Below are positions 1 through 12,108 of a stretch of DNA of 64,000 nucleotides, in pieces. A program made the translations under genes and the position numbers. The notes under the pieces are model-generated. The model saw only the letters and a list, made by a program, of their open reading frames with translations. It was not told the DNA's origin and made no database searches. The stretch's first letter is position 1. Each line of letters starts with the position of its first letter. Where the stretch lies: the sequence record MN871444.1; one strand, 5' to 3'.

Positions 1-980
1 TCAATACCGTATTTGTGGGTTCCGTCAGCACGGCAGTTACTCAACTGACTGCGATTATCTAAAACAAATCCGCTATAAGTTCCACTCGCCCCATTTGAAT
101 TATTAAGGGCATGACAATTACTCATTATGGCTGAGCCATAAAAACCATGACCATAATTTAAATCAGCGCGGCAATTGGTTAATTTATGCATGGCTCCCGT
201 GGCTGACACACATATCCCAATTTCCGATAACTCCCCCTCCAAATTGACGGCGTAGTTATTTGCGCCACCCAGCAATATACCGCAAAGATACAATGATGTT
301 GATTGTATCGCAGTAATGCCAGTATTACCCTGAATACGTTCAATAAAATTATCGGCGCCATTGAACACAAACACCCCGGTTCTTGCCGATCTCGAACGAT
401 TTAATAAACAGTTTGTTCCAGAAAGATCTGAAAATTTTCCAATCAGAGCATTTGTAACCAATGCCTCATCGGAAAAATAATCCCACTTACATGCAGTGAC
501 AATCCAGTCGTTTGACCCCGCACGAAGATTGACCCCACCACCAGGCAATGCTAACCCACCGCCTTTAAAATCAATCCCGATAATCCCACCACAGTCGCCA
601 CCACCAGTAGGGGTATCTATAACCCATCCTGAAGTTGCCGGCGTAAACTGAGTACCGTACTTAGTTATGGACGCCCCGAAGGATAATATCCCACGCACAG
701 CACCAAAGGTACAACCAATATGGCAGACGTTAGATTTATTTATAAAATTTAATTTATAAACCCCTCTAGGCCAGTAAATCCCACCACCACCTAACGAACT
801 GACATAATCTACCAAGGCTTGCGCCGCTGCAGAATCGTCAGTTATGCCATCCCCAATAATACCATAATCCTTAGCATTAAAAACATCGCTTAAACGCGCC
901 GCCAATGTTCTGGTAACTGATGGGCCATTTTGCGCGGCAAAAGACACCATGCTTGCGCCATCACTTGAACCCAGGTTTGA
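1..980 (-). CDS. Headless (silent) tailspike/depolymerase cassette; continues off the left edge
   Basis: Manual translation shows an uninterrupted frame from 1004 past base 1 (SNLGSSDGASMVSFAAQNGPSVTRTLAARLSDVFNAKDYGIIGDGITDDSAAAQ...IYWPRGVY), typical of a pectate-lyase-3 beta-helix start. In-frame TGA at 1007-1005, no anchor domain and no RBS-backed start. Confidence 0.85.
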
Positions 981-985
981 GGGAA
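960..985 (-). repeat. Left invertase recombination site (hix/gix-like)
   Basis: Minus strand reads TTCCCTCAAACC-TG-GGTTCAAGTGAT; 23/26 identical to the site at 1762-1787, in inverted orientation. Confidence 0.88.
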
Positions 986-1018
986 TATATGTCGACACCA
1001 ACCCTCAAGGACATAAAA

Positions 1019-1570
1019 ATGATCTACGGTTATGCCCGAGTTTCTACTCAACATCAGGATACTACACTACAACTTATTGCGCTTCAGGCAGCCGGTTGCG
1101 ATGAAATTCGCGAAGAAAAAGCGTCTGGTAGAAGTAGAAACAGACCCGTATTGAAGAAACTGCTAACCGATCTTCAATCCGGCGATGAATTAGTATTGTG
1201 GAAAATAGACAGGATGGGTAGGAATGTATTACATGCCTTAACCTGGTTGGCTGAGCTGCAGGATAAGAATGTAAACCTCAGGTCAATCACCGACGCTATC
1301 GATATGCGTACTGCTTCTGGCCGTTATAGTTTTCGCAATATTTTGAATGCCGCACAGTACGAATCGGACGTAAATAGCGAAAGAACCTTGGCTGGACTAG
1401 CTGCAGCCAGAGCACAAGGTAGGGTGGGTGGAAGAAAACCAACAATGACCGAACCCGTTTTGGAGAAAGCACGGGATTTAATAAATGCCGGAAATAATTA
1501 CCGTGAAGTAGCTGAAGTCATCGGAGTGACCACAAAAACGATATACAAATATTTTCCAGTCAATTCATAA
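1019..1570 (+). CDS. Serine DNA invertase (Hin/Gin/Pin family)
   Basis: MIYGYARVST catalytic Ser motif, WKIDRMGRN, ERTLAGLAAARAQGRVGGRK and a C-terminal HTH. Start moved to ATG 1019 (AAGG RBS); ATG 989 is possible. Confidence 0.95.
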   Translation: MIYGYARVSTQHQDTTLQLIALQAAGCDEIREEKASGRSRNRPVLKKLLTDLQSGDELVLWKIDRMGRNVLHALTWLAELQDKNVNLRSITDAIDMRTASGRYSFRNILNAAQYESDVNSERTLAGLAAARAQGRVGGRKPTMTEPVLEKARDLINAGNNYREVAEVIGVTTKTIYKYFPVNS

Positions 1571-1577
1571 TTTTTTG

Positions 1578-1600
1578 ATGAGGCGGCTTGGCCGCCTCAT
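1578..1600 (+). terminator. Hairpin ATGAGGCGGC-TTG-GCCGCCTCAT followed by TTTATG
   Basis: Perfect 10-bp stem just after the invertase stop. Confidence 0.75.
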
Positions 1601-1634
1601 TTTATGCTTATCATTTTTTACAAGAGGGGCTATC

Positions 1635-3326
1635 ATGGCCAACAGAGCGATTACGAAGAAAATTAGTGCTTTGCCGACCTACGCACTGAACAACAATAAC
1701 GGCAATTTACTGTATAGTGAGGGGGGTGCAAATTACCAATTTCCGTTGAGTAATATTGCCCTTCTTTCAAACCTGGGTTCAAGTGAAGTGGGTAAAGGGG
1801 CGAGTCTGATAGGGACATCAGACGGTAGCAATTTACAACAAATTGCAACAGTAGTAAGTGACCAACTTATAACCAACCCACAAATTGTTGCTGGCGACAA
1901 CATGTCCGTTTTAGACCGAATCAAAGTCAAAGGCCAGTATGACATCAACCCGGCACCTCAGGAACCCCAAGCCGCAGTAGGTATTACTTTTGGAGGGCAG
2001 AATAATACCGGAACCATTATGTTAAATAGTCGAGGTGGAATTCAAACCTCGGTCACAGTAGATGGTTTAACTACAGCGAAAGGATTACACTACCCCTATT
2101 CGGAAGGAATGGGTTATTGGCATGGGGCCTATCAAGATACCTTAGTAAAATTCCCTATAGACGGGATGGCCGATGATAATATCACATACGGTATATTGTT
2201 CTCACATGACGAAAAAACCAACACTCCCAGGATGTTTGCGGTATCTCCACAGTTAACAGAACGGGTTAACTATACAGATCCAGGTAGATATCGCTGGGGC
2301 GGCGCAAACTTTACAGCAGTCCGTGAATTGGCCCAGCTCGATGCAATTGGTAGAAGTTCAGCCAATTCATACGACACTTGGTTCACATTGGATAGTTCCA
2401 ATCCCAATTATATTAATTTCGTATCTTTAACAAATCCAAATTCTGTTACTGGTGGTAATTTTTCATGTATTTTCAGTATAGGCAATTATAGTGCTGATAA
2501 AGTTACAACCTACATACTGGACGTAACAATTCCATCGGCGATTACCACATTAACTCAATATGACGTTAATAAATACATTAGATTTACGGGGATTGGTGGA
2601 GGTTCACTATATCACTATACGGACGCTACTTCTCAAACAAAACCTCGGATTGGTTTTGTTCAAAACACCACCACCGGGGTACTTGATTTTTATATTCAGG
2701 TACCAGCACACGCAACCTATTTTGGTTGTAAATGCTTAAATTCAGGCAATCCTGCTTTATTTGACTGGAGATGGAGAAATTACATCGGGGGTACGCAATT
2801 ATCGGGTCTTGCTGGTAGTCCTCCCGCAGGTGTTGTTTGGGGGAACACGGCATATACTGGAAGTAATTATCGAACAGTGATGTTAAATGACGGTAGTTTA
2901 TTTTCAGTACCTGAGGGCTATGCTGTCTTGAGATGCCACATCAATGGTCCAGCTGGGGTGATTAACGCCGCGCCATTTAAAGCATATGTGTCATCATTTT
3001 GTTATGCGACTAATTTCGATAGTAAAATAGCCAATGTGACTTGCGCCATACCTAGTTTAAACTGGTATATCACCGGGGCAGATCTAGCCACAGATATGCC
3101 TTGGCAGATTAGACTCCCCCACGATCTAACTGATGTCGAATCGTACCGATGTGTTGTGTCTAGTACTGATACAACAAATCACACATTTATGTTTGCTGTC
3201 AAAAAAGTGAATACTTCCGGCACGTTAGATTCCAGTAATAACGTAATTTTGACCAAGTCCCTAAGTACTAGTCCAGTACAAATAAGTAGTGTATCGTGGA
3301 TTGATGTACTGGTTAAACTACCATAA
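1635..3326 (+). CDS. Tail fibre/RBP, currently expressed orientation (constant anchor + variable part A)
   Basis: ATG 1635 with GAGGGG RBS; N-terminal anchor shared with 5190 and 7631; LGSS..GKGASLIG linker; recombination site lies at codons 43-51. Confidence 0.8.
   Translation: MANRAITKKISALPTYALNNNNGNLLYSEGGANYQFPLSNIALLSNLGSSEVGKGASLIGTSDGSNLQQIATVVSDQLITNPQIVAGDNMSVLDRIKVKGQYDINPAPQEPQAAVGITFGGQNNTGTIMLNSRGGIQTSVTVDGLTTAKGLHYPYSEGMGYWHGAYQDTLVKFPIDGMADDNITYGILFSHDEKTNTPRMFAVSPQLTERVNYTDPGRYRWGGANFTAVRELAQLDAIGRSSANSYDTWFTLDSSNPNYINFVSLTNPNSVTGGNFSCIFSIGNYSADKVTTYILDVTIPSAITTLTQYDVNKYIRFTGIGGGSLYHYTDATSQTKPRIGFVQNTTTGVLDFYIQVPAHATYFGCKCLNSGNPALFDWRWRNYIGGTQLSGLAGSPPAGVVWGNTAYTGSNYRTVMLNDGSLFSVPEGYAVLRCHINGPAGVINAAPFKAYVSSFCYATNFDSKIANVTCAIPSLNWYITGADLATDMPWQIRLPHDLTDVESYRCVVSSTDTTNHTFMFAVKKVNTSGTLDSSNNVILTKSLSTSPVQISSVSWIDVLVKLP
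1762..1787 (+). repeat. Right invertase recombination site (hix/gix-like)
   Basis: TTCTTTCAAACC-TG-GGTTCAAGTGAA; left half resembles hixL TTCTTGAAAACC; 20 bp perfectly inverted relative to 961-980. Confidence 0.88.
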
Positions 3327-3341
3327 GTTGCAGGTGAGAAC

Positions 3342-5069
3342 ATGAATTATTATTATATCGATCCGACCGCCACGTCCTCAGGTAATGGGACAATAACAGC
3401 ACCATATCAATCGTTTACTGCACTGATTTCCGCAGGTATAATTCATCCATGCACTATTTATTTGAAACGAGGGACTACGTTATGTGAAAACGCCAACTTT
3501 GGCGTATCTGGTCTGGCCAATACTACTGGGATTATGTCGTATATAGATTGCTACGGTTCCGGGCCTTTACCAATATGGATGAATAAAAAATACGTCACCG
3601 TGGGAACCGCATTAGATGGATATACTTATAGCGGTATGCATATTACCGCACGAAATACACAAAACATCACCATCCAAAATATTGAATTTTATACCAGGAA
3701 TGACTTGACTGTGGTTGACAATAACCCCTCTTCATTCTTATGGTTGGAATTGCCAGCGGCCACTACCGAGATATCCGCTAACGTATGGGTTAACCAATGT
3801 AAGTTCCATGGTGACCCGATTATCCGTAGTGGAAAACACACGTGGTATGAATCGGTCATTAATATAAAAGTCAATGCAAGTGCAACTAATCGGGTTAATT
3901 ATTTTGGCGTGCGGTATTGTGACTTTTATAACGTATCAAGGCCCATCAATATTGTCGGCAATCATTGGACGGCGGACGATATTACTAGCAATGCAACCGG
4001 TACTTATTATTCCAGGGGTGTAAAAGTAGAACATTGTTCTATGGTCGGGATTTCAAAAGGCGGTTGTCAGTTTGCCGGAGTGGAAAGTAAAAACTCCGCA
4101 TATGTCGTGGATGTTGACCAATCGGTTATGCGTGACATCAGCTATTCCAAATACCGGTGGGATAACGCGTTGGAAAATTCTGATACGTTGTATGCTGATG
4201 CCGGATTCTGGACTTATAGATGTAATCGGGTGATGCTTGAAAATATCCGTGGTGGTGGGATGTGGCCTTCTGTGACGGACAACGAATTAATTGATTTCGA
4301 TTACCTCAGCTGGGATTGCGTTGCACGATACATCATCGGGTTCAACAACGCAGCATCAATATTGTTTATGGGGCATTCTTCTACCGCTTCTCAAGGCGGT
4401 TCTAGGGCAGCATATTCCGGTTATTCCTCGACGTATACTCCAGCGCAATGGTTTTATGAGCGTAGAAATGGTCAAGGTAATAACATTGTTGAGTTTTGCT
4501 ATTTCTTCAACGATGGGATTCAAACCGTACCCGCCCCCTCCACTGGATATGGGGATTGCGCAAATATCCGTTCCAGGAATATAAATTATTCAAATATTGT
4601 TAGGAATTGTGTATTCATTGATACCGTGTCTACTACGATGAAATATTTGGTTTCTAATAACAATCTTGCACTTACTGCTGGAGAGCCATACCGTCTATCT
4701 ATCGAAAACTGCGTTTATTATTCCAGATACAACAATGGAATTGACCTAATAACTCCACTCGCAAACACAACCACGTATAGTGCAACAGCGACGAAGATGA
4801 CTAACATAATTGCTATGTCTGCTGCATGGGCAAGTACTAATTATGCGTCTATTCTTAGCACTTTAAGTGCTAACTGCACCACTAATAATGCTCGGATAGT
4901 CGACCCCCTATTTCGCTTCGTACCAGCCCAACCGCCAGTATCGGTGAAATCGGCATTGAAGATATCCGTGACCTCCGATTCACCCTGTATTTCTTCCGGC
5001 ATATCCAGTGGTAATTTGGACATCGTGGGGAAAACGTGCTCCGATATTTTTTGGAGATCCTTAAGTTGA
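3342..5069 (+). CDS. Right-handed beta-helix (pectin-lyase-like) protein, putative depolymerase without anchor
   Basis: YYIDPTATSSGNGTITAPYQSF...IYLKRGT N-terminus and V/I-x-N-C repeats; 15 bp after the upstream fibre gene. Confidence 0.7.
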   Translation: MNYYYIDPTATSSGNGTITAPYQSFTALISAGIIHPCTIYLKRGTTLCENANFGVSGLANTTGIMSYIDCYGSGPLPIWMNKKYVTVGTALDGYTYSGMHITARNTQNITIQNIEFYTRNDLTVVDNNPSSFLWLELPAATTEISANVWVNQCKFHGDPIIRSGKHTWYESVINIKVNASATNRVNYFGVRYCDFYNVSRPINIVGNHWTADDITSNATGTYYSRGVKVEHCSMVGISKGGCQFAGVESKNSAYVVDVDQSVMRDISYSKYRWDNALENSDTLYADAGFWTYRCNRVMLENIRGGGMWPSVTDNELIDFDYLSWDCVARYIIGFNNAASILFMGHSSTASQGGSRAAYSGYSSTYTPAQWFYERRNGQGNNIVEFCYFFNDGIQTVPAPSTGYGDCANIRSRNINYSNIVRNCVFIDTVSTTMKYLVSNNNLALTAGEPYRLSIENCVYYSRYNNGIDLITPLANTTTYSATATKMTNIIAMSAAWASTNYASILSTLSANCTTNNARIVDPLFRFVPAQPPVSVKSALKISVTSDSPCISSGISSGNLDIVGKTCSDIFWRSLS

Positions 5070-5189: not shown

Positions 5190-7091
5190 ATGGTCGCACG
5201 TGCAGTCACAAAAAAGATTACTGACTTACCTCTCTACTCACTTAATTTAAATCAAGGAAATATCCTTTATAGTGAAGGTGGACTCAGTTATCAATACCCT
5301 ATGTCTGGGATCGTCAAGAAAGCATTTACTTTTACTGTAGGCGGCACACTACAATCCAACACCGATCGCATCAGTGACGGGGTCTACCTGTATTATTGGA
5401 CCGGACAATACCCAAAAATAGTCGCCGCAGGAACCACAATTCAAAATACCGGCGGAATCGGTGTCGGGGCATGGGCTCCCGACACCGAATTAACCCTTAG
5501 GGATTATTTAAGTTCAACTTCCGGCAGTAGTGCAGTTGGATTATCTCTCGGGGGTACCGTTAATGACGCTATAGGTTGGGTAATCCCAGAAAATTTTGGT
5601 GTAGACTATAGTAACGCTGCCGCCGGTTTGCAGGCGGCCATGAATTATGCGGTATCTGTGGGGAAACCATTAAAAGTGTTGGGAAAAACCATCACCTTGA
5701 AATCACAAATCACGATACCTACGCAGTTGGTTGCAGATTTCACCGGATCGGTATTTATTGCTGATGCAGCTATTACCTCTGGAGCAGCAATAGTAGTAGA
5801 TGGGTCTGGTTCTATTGTCGCCGGGCAATACGCCGGTAACATTACTGGATTGGTATTAATAAGACCTTTATCTAGTGGGCACCCGGATACTAGCTCTAAT
5901 GTTGATGGTATTAGTTTTACTGGTTCTAGTGGTCAAGCATCAGATATGAAGTGGGTATTCCCACAGGTCTATGGGTTTAGAGATAATATCCGGTACGATG
6001 GGCCTAATACATATTTAAATAATTTTATTTCACCAAGGATAGGTTTTGCTTGGCGCCGGGGGATAGCTGTTTACGCCAGTGTAAACTCTAATGAAAACCA
6101 CTTTATTACCGGTGGGTCTATCTTTAACTGCAACAATACACAATTTAATGGCGTAGGTATATACATCGACCCTACAGCGTCAGATACTGAATTGCATTTA
6201 TGCGGTACTTCGATAGACTATTGCGATTTATCCATCTATGCTTATCTTGGTCGCGTAGAATGTACAACTTGCCATTTTGAAAATAACAATAATAATCCCC
6301 ACGTTACTTTAAGTTACACCCCGGCAAAAGAAAAACCAACATTCGTCATGCATGGTGGTGTTTTGGGTGGTGGTCCGGGAATCACAACGTGGACGGGTAT
6401 ACCCGTGGAAGGCAATAATGGTAGACCTTCATTAATTTACGCCGTGAATACTGGTTCGGTGAACGTTCATCTTTATGGTGTTAAATGCGGTGGGTATAAG
6501 GCTGGGGTCCGTCGAGATACTGAGATATTAAAAGTAGAAGCCAACAATACTAGTGTACTAAATACAGTGGACATCCACCCAATATTGGATGCAGGTAATG
6601 CAGATACTTCTTCTAGACCATTACGTGTATGCAACGCACTTAATGCGATGTATGTGACCTCATACTCGATGGCTGGCTGGACCCAGTCAGTAAGCCGCAA
6701 TGATGGGACAATCACTTTCAGTGTAGATACTACGGTGTATTACGATTCAAACTCACCACATTCGAGAAAATACGTCGGTACAGCAGCATTTTCTACTGGG
6801 ATATATCAAGATATTCCGTGCGTTGGGGGAAAAATATTTAATTTGAATTTATTTGTTTTAGTCACTGCATTAACTGCCGGTTCAGTAAATATTCGATGTG
6901 AGTTTTACGCTCCAGGAAACACCCTGATTGCCACCGAAATAAAAACCATAAATGCAGTTACTGCCGATTGGACCCAGCTTTGGGTATACAGAAAAGTTCC
7001 AAATGGCGCAGTTAGTGTCAGGGTCCAAGAGTACTACAATGGATTTACTGGCACCGCCTATTTTTCAAATGAAAATTTATGGTTCCATTAA
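5190..7091 (+). CDS. Tailspike/depolymerase: anchor + TSP N-domain + beta-helix + C-terminal CBM-like domain
   Basis: Shared anchor; GGTLQ...YYWTGQYPK.V.AG...GG.G.GAW tailspike N-domain; PENFG...AAAGLQAA helix start; jelly-roll-like C-terminus. Confidence 0.8.
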   Translation: MVARAVTKKITDLPLYSLNLNQGNILYSEGGLSYQYPMSGIVKKAFTFTVGGTLQSNTDRISDGVYLYYWTGQYPKIVAAGTTIQNTGGIGVGAWAPDTELTLRDYLSSTSGSSAVGLSLGGTVNDAIGWVIPENFGVDYSNAAAGLQAAMNYAVSVGKPLKVLGKTITLKSQITIPTQLVADFTGSVFIADAAITSGAAIVVDGSGSIVAGQYAGNITGLVLIRPLSSGHPDTSSNVDGISFTGSSGQASDMKWVFPQVYGFRDNIRYDGPNTYLNNFISPRIGFAWRRGIAVYASVNSNENHFITGGSIFNCNNTQFNGVGIYIDPTASDTELHLCGTSIDYCDLSIYAYLGRVECTTCHFENNNNNPHVTLSYTPAKEKPTFVMHGGVLGGGPGITTWTGIPVEGNNGRPSLIYAVNTGSVNVHLYGVKCGGYKAGVRRDTEILKVEANNTSVLNTVDIHPILDAGNADTSSRPLRVCNALNAMYVTSYSMAGWTQSVSRNDGTITFSVDTTVYYDSNSPHSRKYVGTAAFSTGIYQDIPCVGGKIFNLNLFVLVTALTAGSVNIRCEFYAPGNTLIATEIKTINAVTADWTQLWVYRKVPNGAVSVRVQEYYNGFTGTAYFSNENLWFH

Positions 7092-12045: not shown

Positions 12046-12108
12046 AAATATGCCGTACATTTTTTACGGATGGTTTTGATATTCTGTAATCTAGCCGGAG
12101 TAATACAA

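Follow-up and report, generated by a model that had tools for sequence, protein, structure and literature searches.

A probable site-specific DNA inversion switch for one receptor-binding protein of the Klebsiella jumbo phage KpGz_1

We analysed a stretch of 64,000 nucleotides (nt) from the unannotated, 269-kilobase (kb) record MN871444.1 (bases 124001-188000), which we call the window. The record is named Serratia phage KpGz_1 and states Klebsiella pneumoniae as the host; KpGz_1 is an Eowyn-like Klebsiella jumbo phage. The left end of the window very probably holds a switch that alters one receptor-binding protein of this phage through site-specific DNA inversion. An earlier note on this DNA had described a headless depolymerase frame at the left edge and proposed that it was an alternative cassette, expressible only after inversion. 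Our results agree that an alternative cassette can probably be joined through inversion, as there is an invertase, an in-frame repeat and an intact body without an anchor, and as both orientations are found in relatives. The cassette itself, however, is not predicted to invert. It is an 802-base-pair (bp) segment that would turn over between two fixed cassettes.

We propose that a Gin/Pin-family invertase acts on two inverted sites with identical cores (961-985 and 1762-1786) and thereby flips a unit of about 0.8 kb, which consists of the invertase gene, a hairpin, promoter-like and ribosome-binding signals and an anchor of 44 codons. Each orientation would join the single anchor, in frame, to one of two fixed and unrelated beta-helix bodies, either cassette A on the right (the present state) or cassette B on the left. 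The chemistry may be the usual serine-invertase chemistry of Gin and Hin, with a 2-bp staggered cut at the site centre and a 180 degree rotation of subunits (for example, PMC3575834). We use the name cassette A for the body to the right of the segment, in the gene that starts at 1635, and cassette B for the left, presumably silent, frame. Among the locus labels used below, L001 is MN871444 (KpGz_1), L002 is MN871445 (KpHz_2) and L003 is Eowyn. The features of the locus, in amino acids (aa) where products are concerned, are the following.

1-960 (the part inside the window), minus strand: cassette B, body of a probably silent, anchorless tailspike/depolymerase; the frame continues leftward to MN871444 123457 and has 514 codons in total.
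961-985: left crossover site, a 25-nt arm with the perfect 20-nt core at 961-980 and the 2-bp centre at 972-973; it reads SNLGSS in the frame of cassette B.
986-1761: DNA between the arms, the segment predicted to invert; 776 nt, or 802 bp from site centre to site centre.
1019-1570, plus strand: predicted serine DNA invertase gene, 183 aa (PF00239, HTH_7, alignment to Mu Gin).
1577-1601, plus strand: terminator-like element, a G+C-rich hairpin with a T run after it, which separates the invertase gene from the anchor and is conserved in Eowyn and KpHz_2.
1598-1634, plus strand: promoter-like T-rich/TATGC motif and GAGGGG ribosome-binding site, both of putative function.
1635-1766, plus strand: constant anchor ('head'), which lies inside the invertible segment and forms the first 44 codons of the expressed tailspike gene.
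1762-1786: right crossover site, a 25-nt arm with the core at 1767-1786 and the centre TG at 1774-1775; it reads SNLGSS in the frame of the 1635 gene.
1787-3326, plus strand: cassette A, the body now fused to the anchor; it has no sequence relation to cassette B.
3342-5069, plus strand: anchorless gene of 575 aa, whose start lies 16 nt after cassette A.

The two arms of the inverted repeat are 25 nt long and 92% identical, and they share a perfect 20-nt core, TCAAACCTGGGTTCAAGTGA. This core occurs exactly twice in the 64 kb, even when three mismatches are allowed, and 100 shuffles gave no match at the same tolerance. Each site is an imperfect palindrome around the 2-bp centre TG, with 8 of 12 flanking positions symmetric. 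The codon phase is identical in both arms, and thus an exchange at the site keeps the reading frame. An identical 20-nt core was found in one arm of a repeat in the IMG/VR contig L011, where the other arm carries a version with four mismatches. The layout of L011 is classical, of the G-segment type: a Gin-like invertase (48% identical) and a constant N-terminus lie outside, and two alternative bodies lie inside. Because this classical tail-fibre locus uses the identical core, there is strong support for the repeat of KpGz_1 being a genuine crossover site.

The same 20-nt core was also seen in four otherwise unrelated viral contigs of IMG/VR (L012-L015), where it reads SSNLGSS; these contigs lack an invertase and are not similar to the locus of KpGz_1. 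We also looked at pinL of phage phi80. The repeat annotated as 'IR3' upstream of pinL bears no relation to the KpGz_1 site, and it was therefore of no use as a comparator.

The product of the gene at 1019 is predicted to be a serine invertase of the Gin/Pin family. It matches PF00239 (E 3.6e-36) and, at the edge of the threshold, HTH_7 (E 5e-5; 23.7 bits against a cut-off of 23.8), and it aligns to Mu Gin (4m6f, 3uj3) without a gap over residues 1-181 (E 5e-45). The residue Ser9, which is the nucleophilic serine of Gin (PMC3575834), is present. The Pin-like invertases of phi80, mEp237 and HK225 are about 62% identical to the KpGz_1 enzyme. In Gin, M114V is a Fis-independent mutation (PMC3575834), and residue 114 of the KpGz_1 invertase is a tyrosine. 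We rejected this residue as a change specific to jumbo phages because Tyr114 is common to the whole Pin-like subclade, including the prophage enzymes. An in-frame ATG at 989, 30 nt upstream of the start given above, would yield an invertase of 193 aa, and the gene is called in this way in record P0064 of the Joint Genome Institute (JGI). As this ATG begins 3 nt after the left arm, it would leave almost no room for a promoter inside the segment. A search of IMG/VR for related loci with the invertase returned no relatives, and neither IMG/VR nor the JGI metagenomes contained an exact match to a 30-nt probe that was taken from the end of the segment next to the invertase.

Cassette B was the subject of the earlier note, and its frame was confirmed. 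On the minus strand, 334 codons are open between 1004 and base 3, and the frame is closed just upstream, as the note had it. When followed leftward in the record, it has 514 codons (MN871444 123457-125001; L001 7457-9001, minus strand) and stops 44 nt beyond a convergent gene for a 172-aa DUF7941 virion protein. There are no early stop codons, the alignment with the homologues extends as far as their C-terminus, and both of the start motifs quoted for it are there. It was indeed missing from the list of open reading frames (ORFs) of the window, for the sole reason that the list omits ORFs that run off the window edge.

The protein encoded by this frame resembles tailspikes. Residues 41-83 match PF12708 just below the Pfam cut-off (26.1 bits against 27; E 8.7e-6), and a precomputed annotation in a public collection assigns PF12708 to the protein. 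From the junction motif to the last residue, tailspikes of the Klebsiella phages Bullseye_ER20, Rappa3, KP3-1 and RCIP0003 are 73-77% identical to it, and metagenomic proteins reach up to 82% identity. An AlphaFold2 model, built on 43 homologues, predicts a long beta-helix with a mean predicted local distance difference test (pLDDT) score of 90.9. In a Foldseek comparison with the PDB, the top matches were the tailspikes of Sf6, CBA120 (TSP3) and HK620 (significant, at E 2e-9 to 1e-7), with the AlgE4/AlgE6 epimerases ranking after them; the superposition was modest overall, and the best template-modelling (TM) scores were about 0.5. A profile search with cassette B led to the same families.

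What cassette B lacks is the beginning of such a protein. Among 47 homologues with E below 1e-60, 46 have an extra N-terminal part of 55-262 residues, and in the remaining one this part is 24 residues long. Similarity typically begins at the L-x-S-x-x-G junction of the homologues, and in PHROG tail-protein profiles residues 4-10 of cassette B align to profile positions around 135-155. The four Klebsiella phage tailspikes named above are like cassette B in the body, for which the beta-helix is predicted, but they have N-terminal anchors of their own and cassette B has none. In Bullseye_ER20, for instance, the gene is 1824 nt long and the match to cassette B begins 300 nt in. Because the frame is intact, the fold is that predicted for tailspikes and the homologues carry extra N-terminal residues, cassette B is, judged from sequence and model, a complete tailspike body without a virion anchor.

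The missing anchor is present elsewhere in the locus. The segment of about 44 residues at the start of the 1635 product is common to the products of the genes at 5190 and 7631 and to those of two receptor-binding genes upstream of the window, with 34-61% identity. It had been suggested earlier that cassette B lacks an anchor that the other three receptor-binding proteins carry. The anchor is absent from cassette B and is carried by the 1635, 5190 and 7631 products; the 3342 product, however, is also without it. Because the unjoined body lacks an anchor, a convincing start and an evident promoter, we think that it is most likely silent, or at any rate left out of the virion.

Cassette A matches a PHROG tail protein family and has relatives in other Klebsiella jumbo phages. 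Past the junction, there is no similarity between cassettes A and B, and the same is true of cassette B and the left cassette of KpHz_2. This lack of sequence relation between A and B, which is our sole basis here, suggests that the two bodies recognise different polysaccharides, as the earlier note had supposed. In the literature searched, we found nothing usable on the capsule type of the nearest relatives of cassette B.

Relatives of the KpGz_1 module have the segment in both orientations. A 90% cluster of the invertase has eight members, whose contigs gave the loci L007 and L016-L021, and the invertase ORF is intact with the catalytic Ser9 in all eight. Two of these loci can be compared over the segment and its flanks: L017, an 83-kb Logan contig from run SRR14739079, and L018, from SRR28229723.

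L017 4943-5769 and L018 1915-2740: segment with both cores (827-bp block), collinear, 98.9% identical.
L017 5750-7681 and L018 1935-4: cassette flank, reversed, 99.1% identical.
L017 1-580 and L018 7096-6517: flank with the DUF7941 173-aa gene, reversed, 94.7% identical.

The switch of orientation between L017 and L018 falls inside the 20-nt cores. The cassette that we call Q is fused to the head in L017 and L021 and is headless in L018, L019 and L020, because the orientation of the segment differs relative to both flanks. Likewise, cassette P is fused to the head in L018-L020 and is headless beside the invertase in L007, with 100% identity over 690 nt. All of the headless cassettes that we saw are intact ORFs (513, 611, 639, 647, 660 and 668 aa). 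The cores are perfect or one position off in every relative; the core of Eowyn, which has no invertase, has two mismatches. The segment probably also flips in KpGz_1 itself.

KpHz_2 is 98.8% identical to KpGz_1 over the segment and cassette A (window 958-3398). Elsewhere (window 20000-44000, 24 kb), the two are about 86% identical over 69% of the length. These sequences suggest that the module was recently transferred or swept between two distinct phages. The left cassette of KpHz_2 is a different one, of 611 aa. In addition, KpHz_2 (L002 1002-3011 and 8803-8880) has a third perfect 20-nt core, which fronts a third headless tail-fibre cassette of 660 aa. Together with the cassette A junction, at a distance of 5.8 kb, the sequence around this core forms an inverted repeat of 78 nt and 99% identity. 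Two of the three cores are in one orientation and one is in the other. The larger inversion would also turn over the invertase, the 172-aa virion gene, a receptor-binding gene of 849 aa and the other silent cassette.

The anchor is found on a variety of bodies. The same anchor (92-100% identical) is carried by at least six different ones, namely cassette A, that of Eowyn and those of P0060 to P0063; P and Q would bring the count higher if they are not the same as any of these. Relatives without an invertase (Eowyn, L008 and L010) also have the anchor fused to many bodies. Eowyn (L003 8001-8242) keeps about the last 20 nt of the invertase frame, the hairpin, the anchor and its two-mismatch core. 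This remnant fits either the loss of a module or a site that was in place before the module was gained. In L008, a scaffold from the European Nucleotide Archive, a head-fused receptor-binding gene is convergent on the 172-aa gene, like a cassette in the left position; the upstream side is Eowyn-like and lacks an invertase. L008 contains two copies of the 3' end of the 172-aa gene (1-108 and 2499-2606), which form a 108-nt inverted repeat of 88% identity. We did not use L009 (P0063); this contig has low coverage and, with the cellular-type genes TonB and MTHFR next to its head-fused gene, looks chimeric.

The signals that would drive expression of the fusion appear to lie inside the invertible segment. 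The hairpin with the TTTTATGC...GAGGGG stretch upstream of the ATG at 1635 also precedes another receptor-binding gene. A 14-nt promoter pattern was not enriched (23 matches against 17 expected), and a 7-nt motif is too common to be informative, with 24 occurrences in the window, many of them inside genes. A G+C-rich hairpin with a T-rich stretch and TATGYC recurs at intergenic positions upstream of the genes starting at 12070, 18438, 29018, 31276, 41361 and 56234. This recurrent combination looks like a joint terminator and promoter signal of KpGz_1.

Several observations weigh against the inversion switch. The promoter is assigned from a short motif that has no statistical support, and for this reason we present it as a suggestion. 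Gene callers also call the headless frame as a gene of 513 aa that starts inside the segment, at a GTG a few codons upstream of the arm. Cassette B could be expressed alone, without inversion, as a free and soluble depolymerase that has no anchor, from a TTG or GTG just inside the segment or from the ATG at 950. There is a GAGGG immediately upstream of the candidate TTG and GTG on the minus strand, and a TTTTTATGTCC string, which is like the promoter-like motif, lies on the same strand over the invertase start. However, the GAGGG directly abuts the TTG (0 nt) and is separated from the GTG by 3 nt, a spacing too short for a normal ribosome-binding site. The ATG at 950, which the earlier note had named as a possible independent start, lacks a Shine-Dalgarno sequence, and neither KpHz_2 nor L007 conserves it in the headless cassette. 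The short motif, as noted, is frequent within genes, and the stretch with the candidate starts doubles as the 5' region of the invertase itself on the other strand. Moreover, the close homologues of cassette B are anchored proteins in 46 of 47 cases. We consider this kind of expression improbable; it would in any case be compatible with an inversion switch, as the two are not exclusive.

Other points concern the activity of the switch. No flipped KpGz_1 was seen among the deposits, where both KpGz_1 and KpHz_2 are fused to cassette A, and the orientation isomers lie between related strains and not within one clonal stock. The L007 contig has no outer flank around cassette P. It is also uncertain whether host Fis has access to the phage DNA and whether that DNA is supercoiled, as the related genus is reported to be obligately lytic and nucleus-forming (PMC13757433). 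The locus could be a fossil in which the invertase or the sites are dead and cassette B is a stranded remnant, so that diversity arises only by homologous recombination at the junction of anchor and body. The occurrence of one anchor on many bodies in relatives that have no invertase would fit such a fossil, as would the 78-nt repeat of KpHz_2, which is long enough for homologous recombination. A dead locus is difficult to reconcile with the intact invertase ORF and conserved Ser9 of the eight cluster members, the near-perfect cores of the relatives and the intact state of every headless cassette. In addition, the block that is inverted between L017 and L018 ends within the 20-nt cores, and the same core serves the classical invertase locus of L011. 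We therefore regard a fossil locus as very improbable, and hold to an inversion switch.

Switching of receptor-binding proteins by invertases is textbook knowledge for the temperate phages Mu, P1 and e14. In the layout of the Mu G type, the constant N-terminal part and the invertase are outside the segment and the alternative C-terminal parts are inside. The KpGz_1 layout is inside-out by comparison: the invertase, the signals and the constant 5' part are inside the 0.8 kb and the variable bodies are outside. The KpGz_1 enzyme belongs to the same invertase family as Gin of the Mu G segment, Cin of the P1 C segment and Pin of the e14 P segment, as the alignment to Gin and the presence of Ser9 indicate. 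In these systems, as in KpGz_1, the inverted sites are inside the tail-fibre coding sequence at the boundary between its constant and variable parts (PMC3575834), and the C-terminal receptor-binding part is, or would be, swapped in frame. The bodies of KpGz_1 are predicted beta-helix proteins of the tailspike depolymerase type, whereas those of the Mu type are fibres. Unlike in Mu G, no small assembly gene comes after the left cassette, which is directly followed by the convergent 172-aa virion gene. Finally, Mu-type phages are temperate, whereas KpGz_1 is an Eowyn-like jumbo phage, related to a genus reported to be obligately lytic and nucleus-forming.

The Salmonella H segment with Hin, which switches the flagellar phase, is similar to the KpGz_1 segment in other ways. 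In both, the invertase gene is inside a segment of roughly 1 kb, next to one site, and outward-reading expression signals, putative in KpGz_1, are at the other end of the segment. However, Hin moves only a promoter and turns an intact downstream operon ON or OFF. In KpGz_1, the crossover is in coding sequence and the segment carries a 5' exon, and thus each orientation would be ON for a different fusion.

Multiple inversion is known from Min of plasmid p15B and the R64 shufflon. KpGz_1 differs from these in having only two sites, but KpHz_2, with three cores, three bodies and one anchor, is similar to them. The R64 shufflon uses a tyrosine recombinase, whereas the KpGz_1 enzyme is a predicted serine invertase. 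Unlike in Min and R64, the larger inversion of KpHz_2 would flip 5.8 kb that include another receptor-binding gene and a virion protein gene.

Phages of the genus Eowynvirus have been described as obligately lytic and as having a nuclear shell protein, PhuZ and multisubunit RNA polymerases (PMC13757433); this is a description of the genus and not of the gene content of KpGz_1. In the literature searched, we found no report of invertase switching for Klebsiella capsule-depolymerase tailspikes, for Eowyn-like phages or for nucleus-forming jumbo phages, which is not proof of novelty. We tentatively raise the possibility, which goes well beyond the switch itself and is rather less likely to be true than not, that a lytic, nucleus-forming jumbo phage runs a Gin/Pin-type switch during lytic growth, and that the 0.8-kb unit is a portable 'expression head' that has spread among Eowyn-like phages and acts as a shufflon where it has three or more sites, as in KpHz_2. 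If so, either host Fis and a supercoiled substrate would have to be found inside the phage nucleus, or the Pin-like subclade would be Fis-independent. A shufflon in KpHz_2 would reshuffle the whole tailspike locus.

An active switch would have consequences for work with these phages. A clonal stock would be a mixture of two receptor specificities (three in KpHz_2), which would affect how host-range data and genome annotations are read. The 'extra' anchorless tailspike genes of jumbo phages would be better annotated as silent cassettes than as independent genes or pseudogenes. The locus would also demonstrate that one minimal module can unite the Hin-type design, in which the recombinase and promoter are inside, with the Gin-type design, in which the C-terminal part is swapped in frame. 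It would further provide a natural test case for a host-factor-dependent recombinase acting on DNA that is enclosed in a phage nucleus.

The 3342 gene next to cassette A encodes a protein that matches a PHROG of unknown function. The gene may be expressed together with cassette A and hence be co-switched; if it depends on the promoter of cassette A, it would be switched off together with A.

Some of the contigs from the invertase cluster differ in further ways. Two independent assemblies break at about window position 1615-1618, just after the hairpin and the TATGC motif. L007 ends there, and L016 (2733) runs from the break into the interior of another receptor-binding gene, which is 82% identical to L002 15350-16512. 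Either a deletion variant or a join made in assembly, at a promoter motif that is repeated, could account for this shared breakpoint. In L019 (398-4981) and L020 (36-4619), the 172-aa virion gene is on the opposite strand, and an extra receptor-binding gene of 658 aa, with a 45%-identical anchor, lies between the virion gene and the headless cassette. One inversion at the known cores is not enough to account for this order of genes. In L019 (5619-7560), the head-fused cassette P is split into two ORFs by one break, whereas it is a single ORF of 646 aa in L018.

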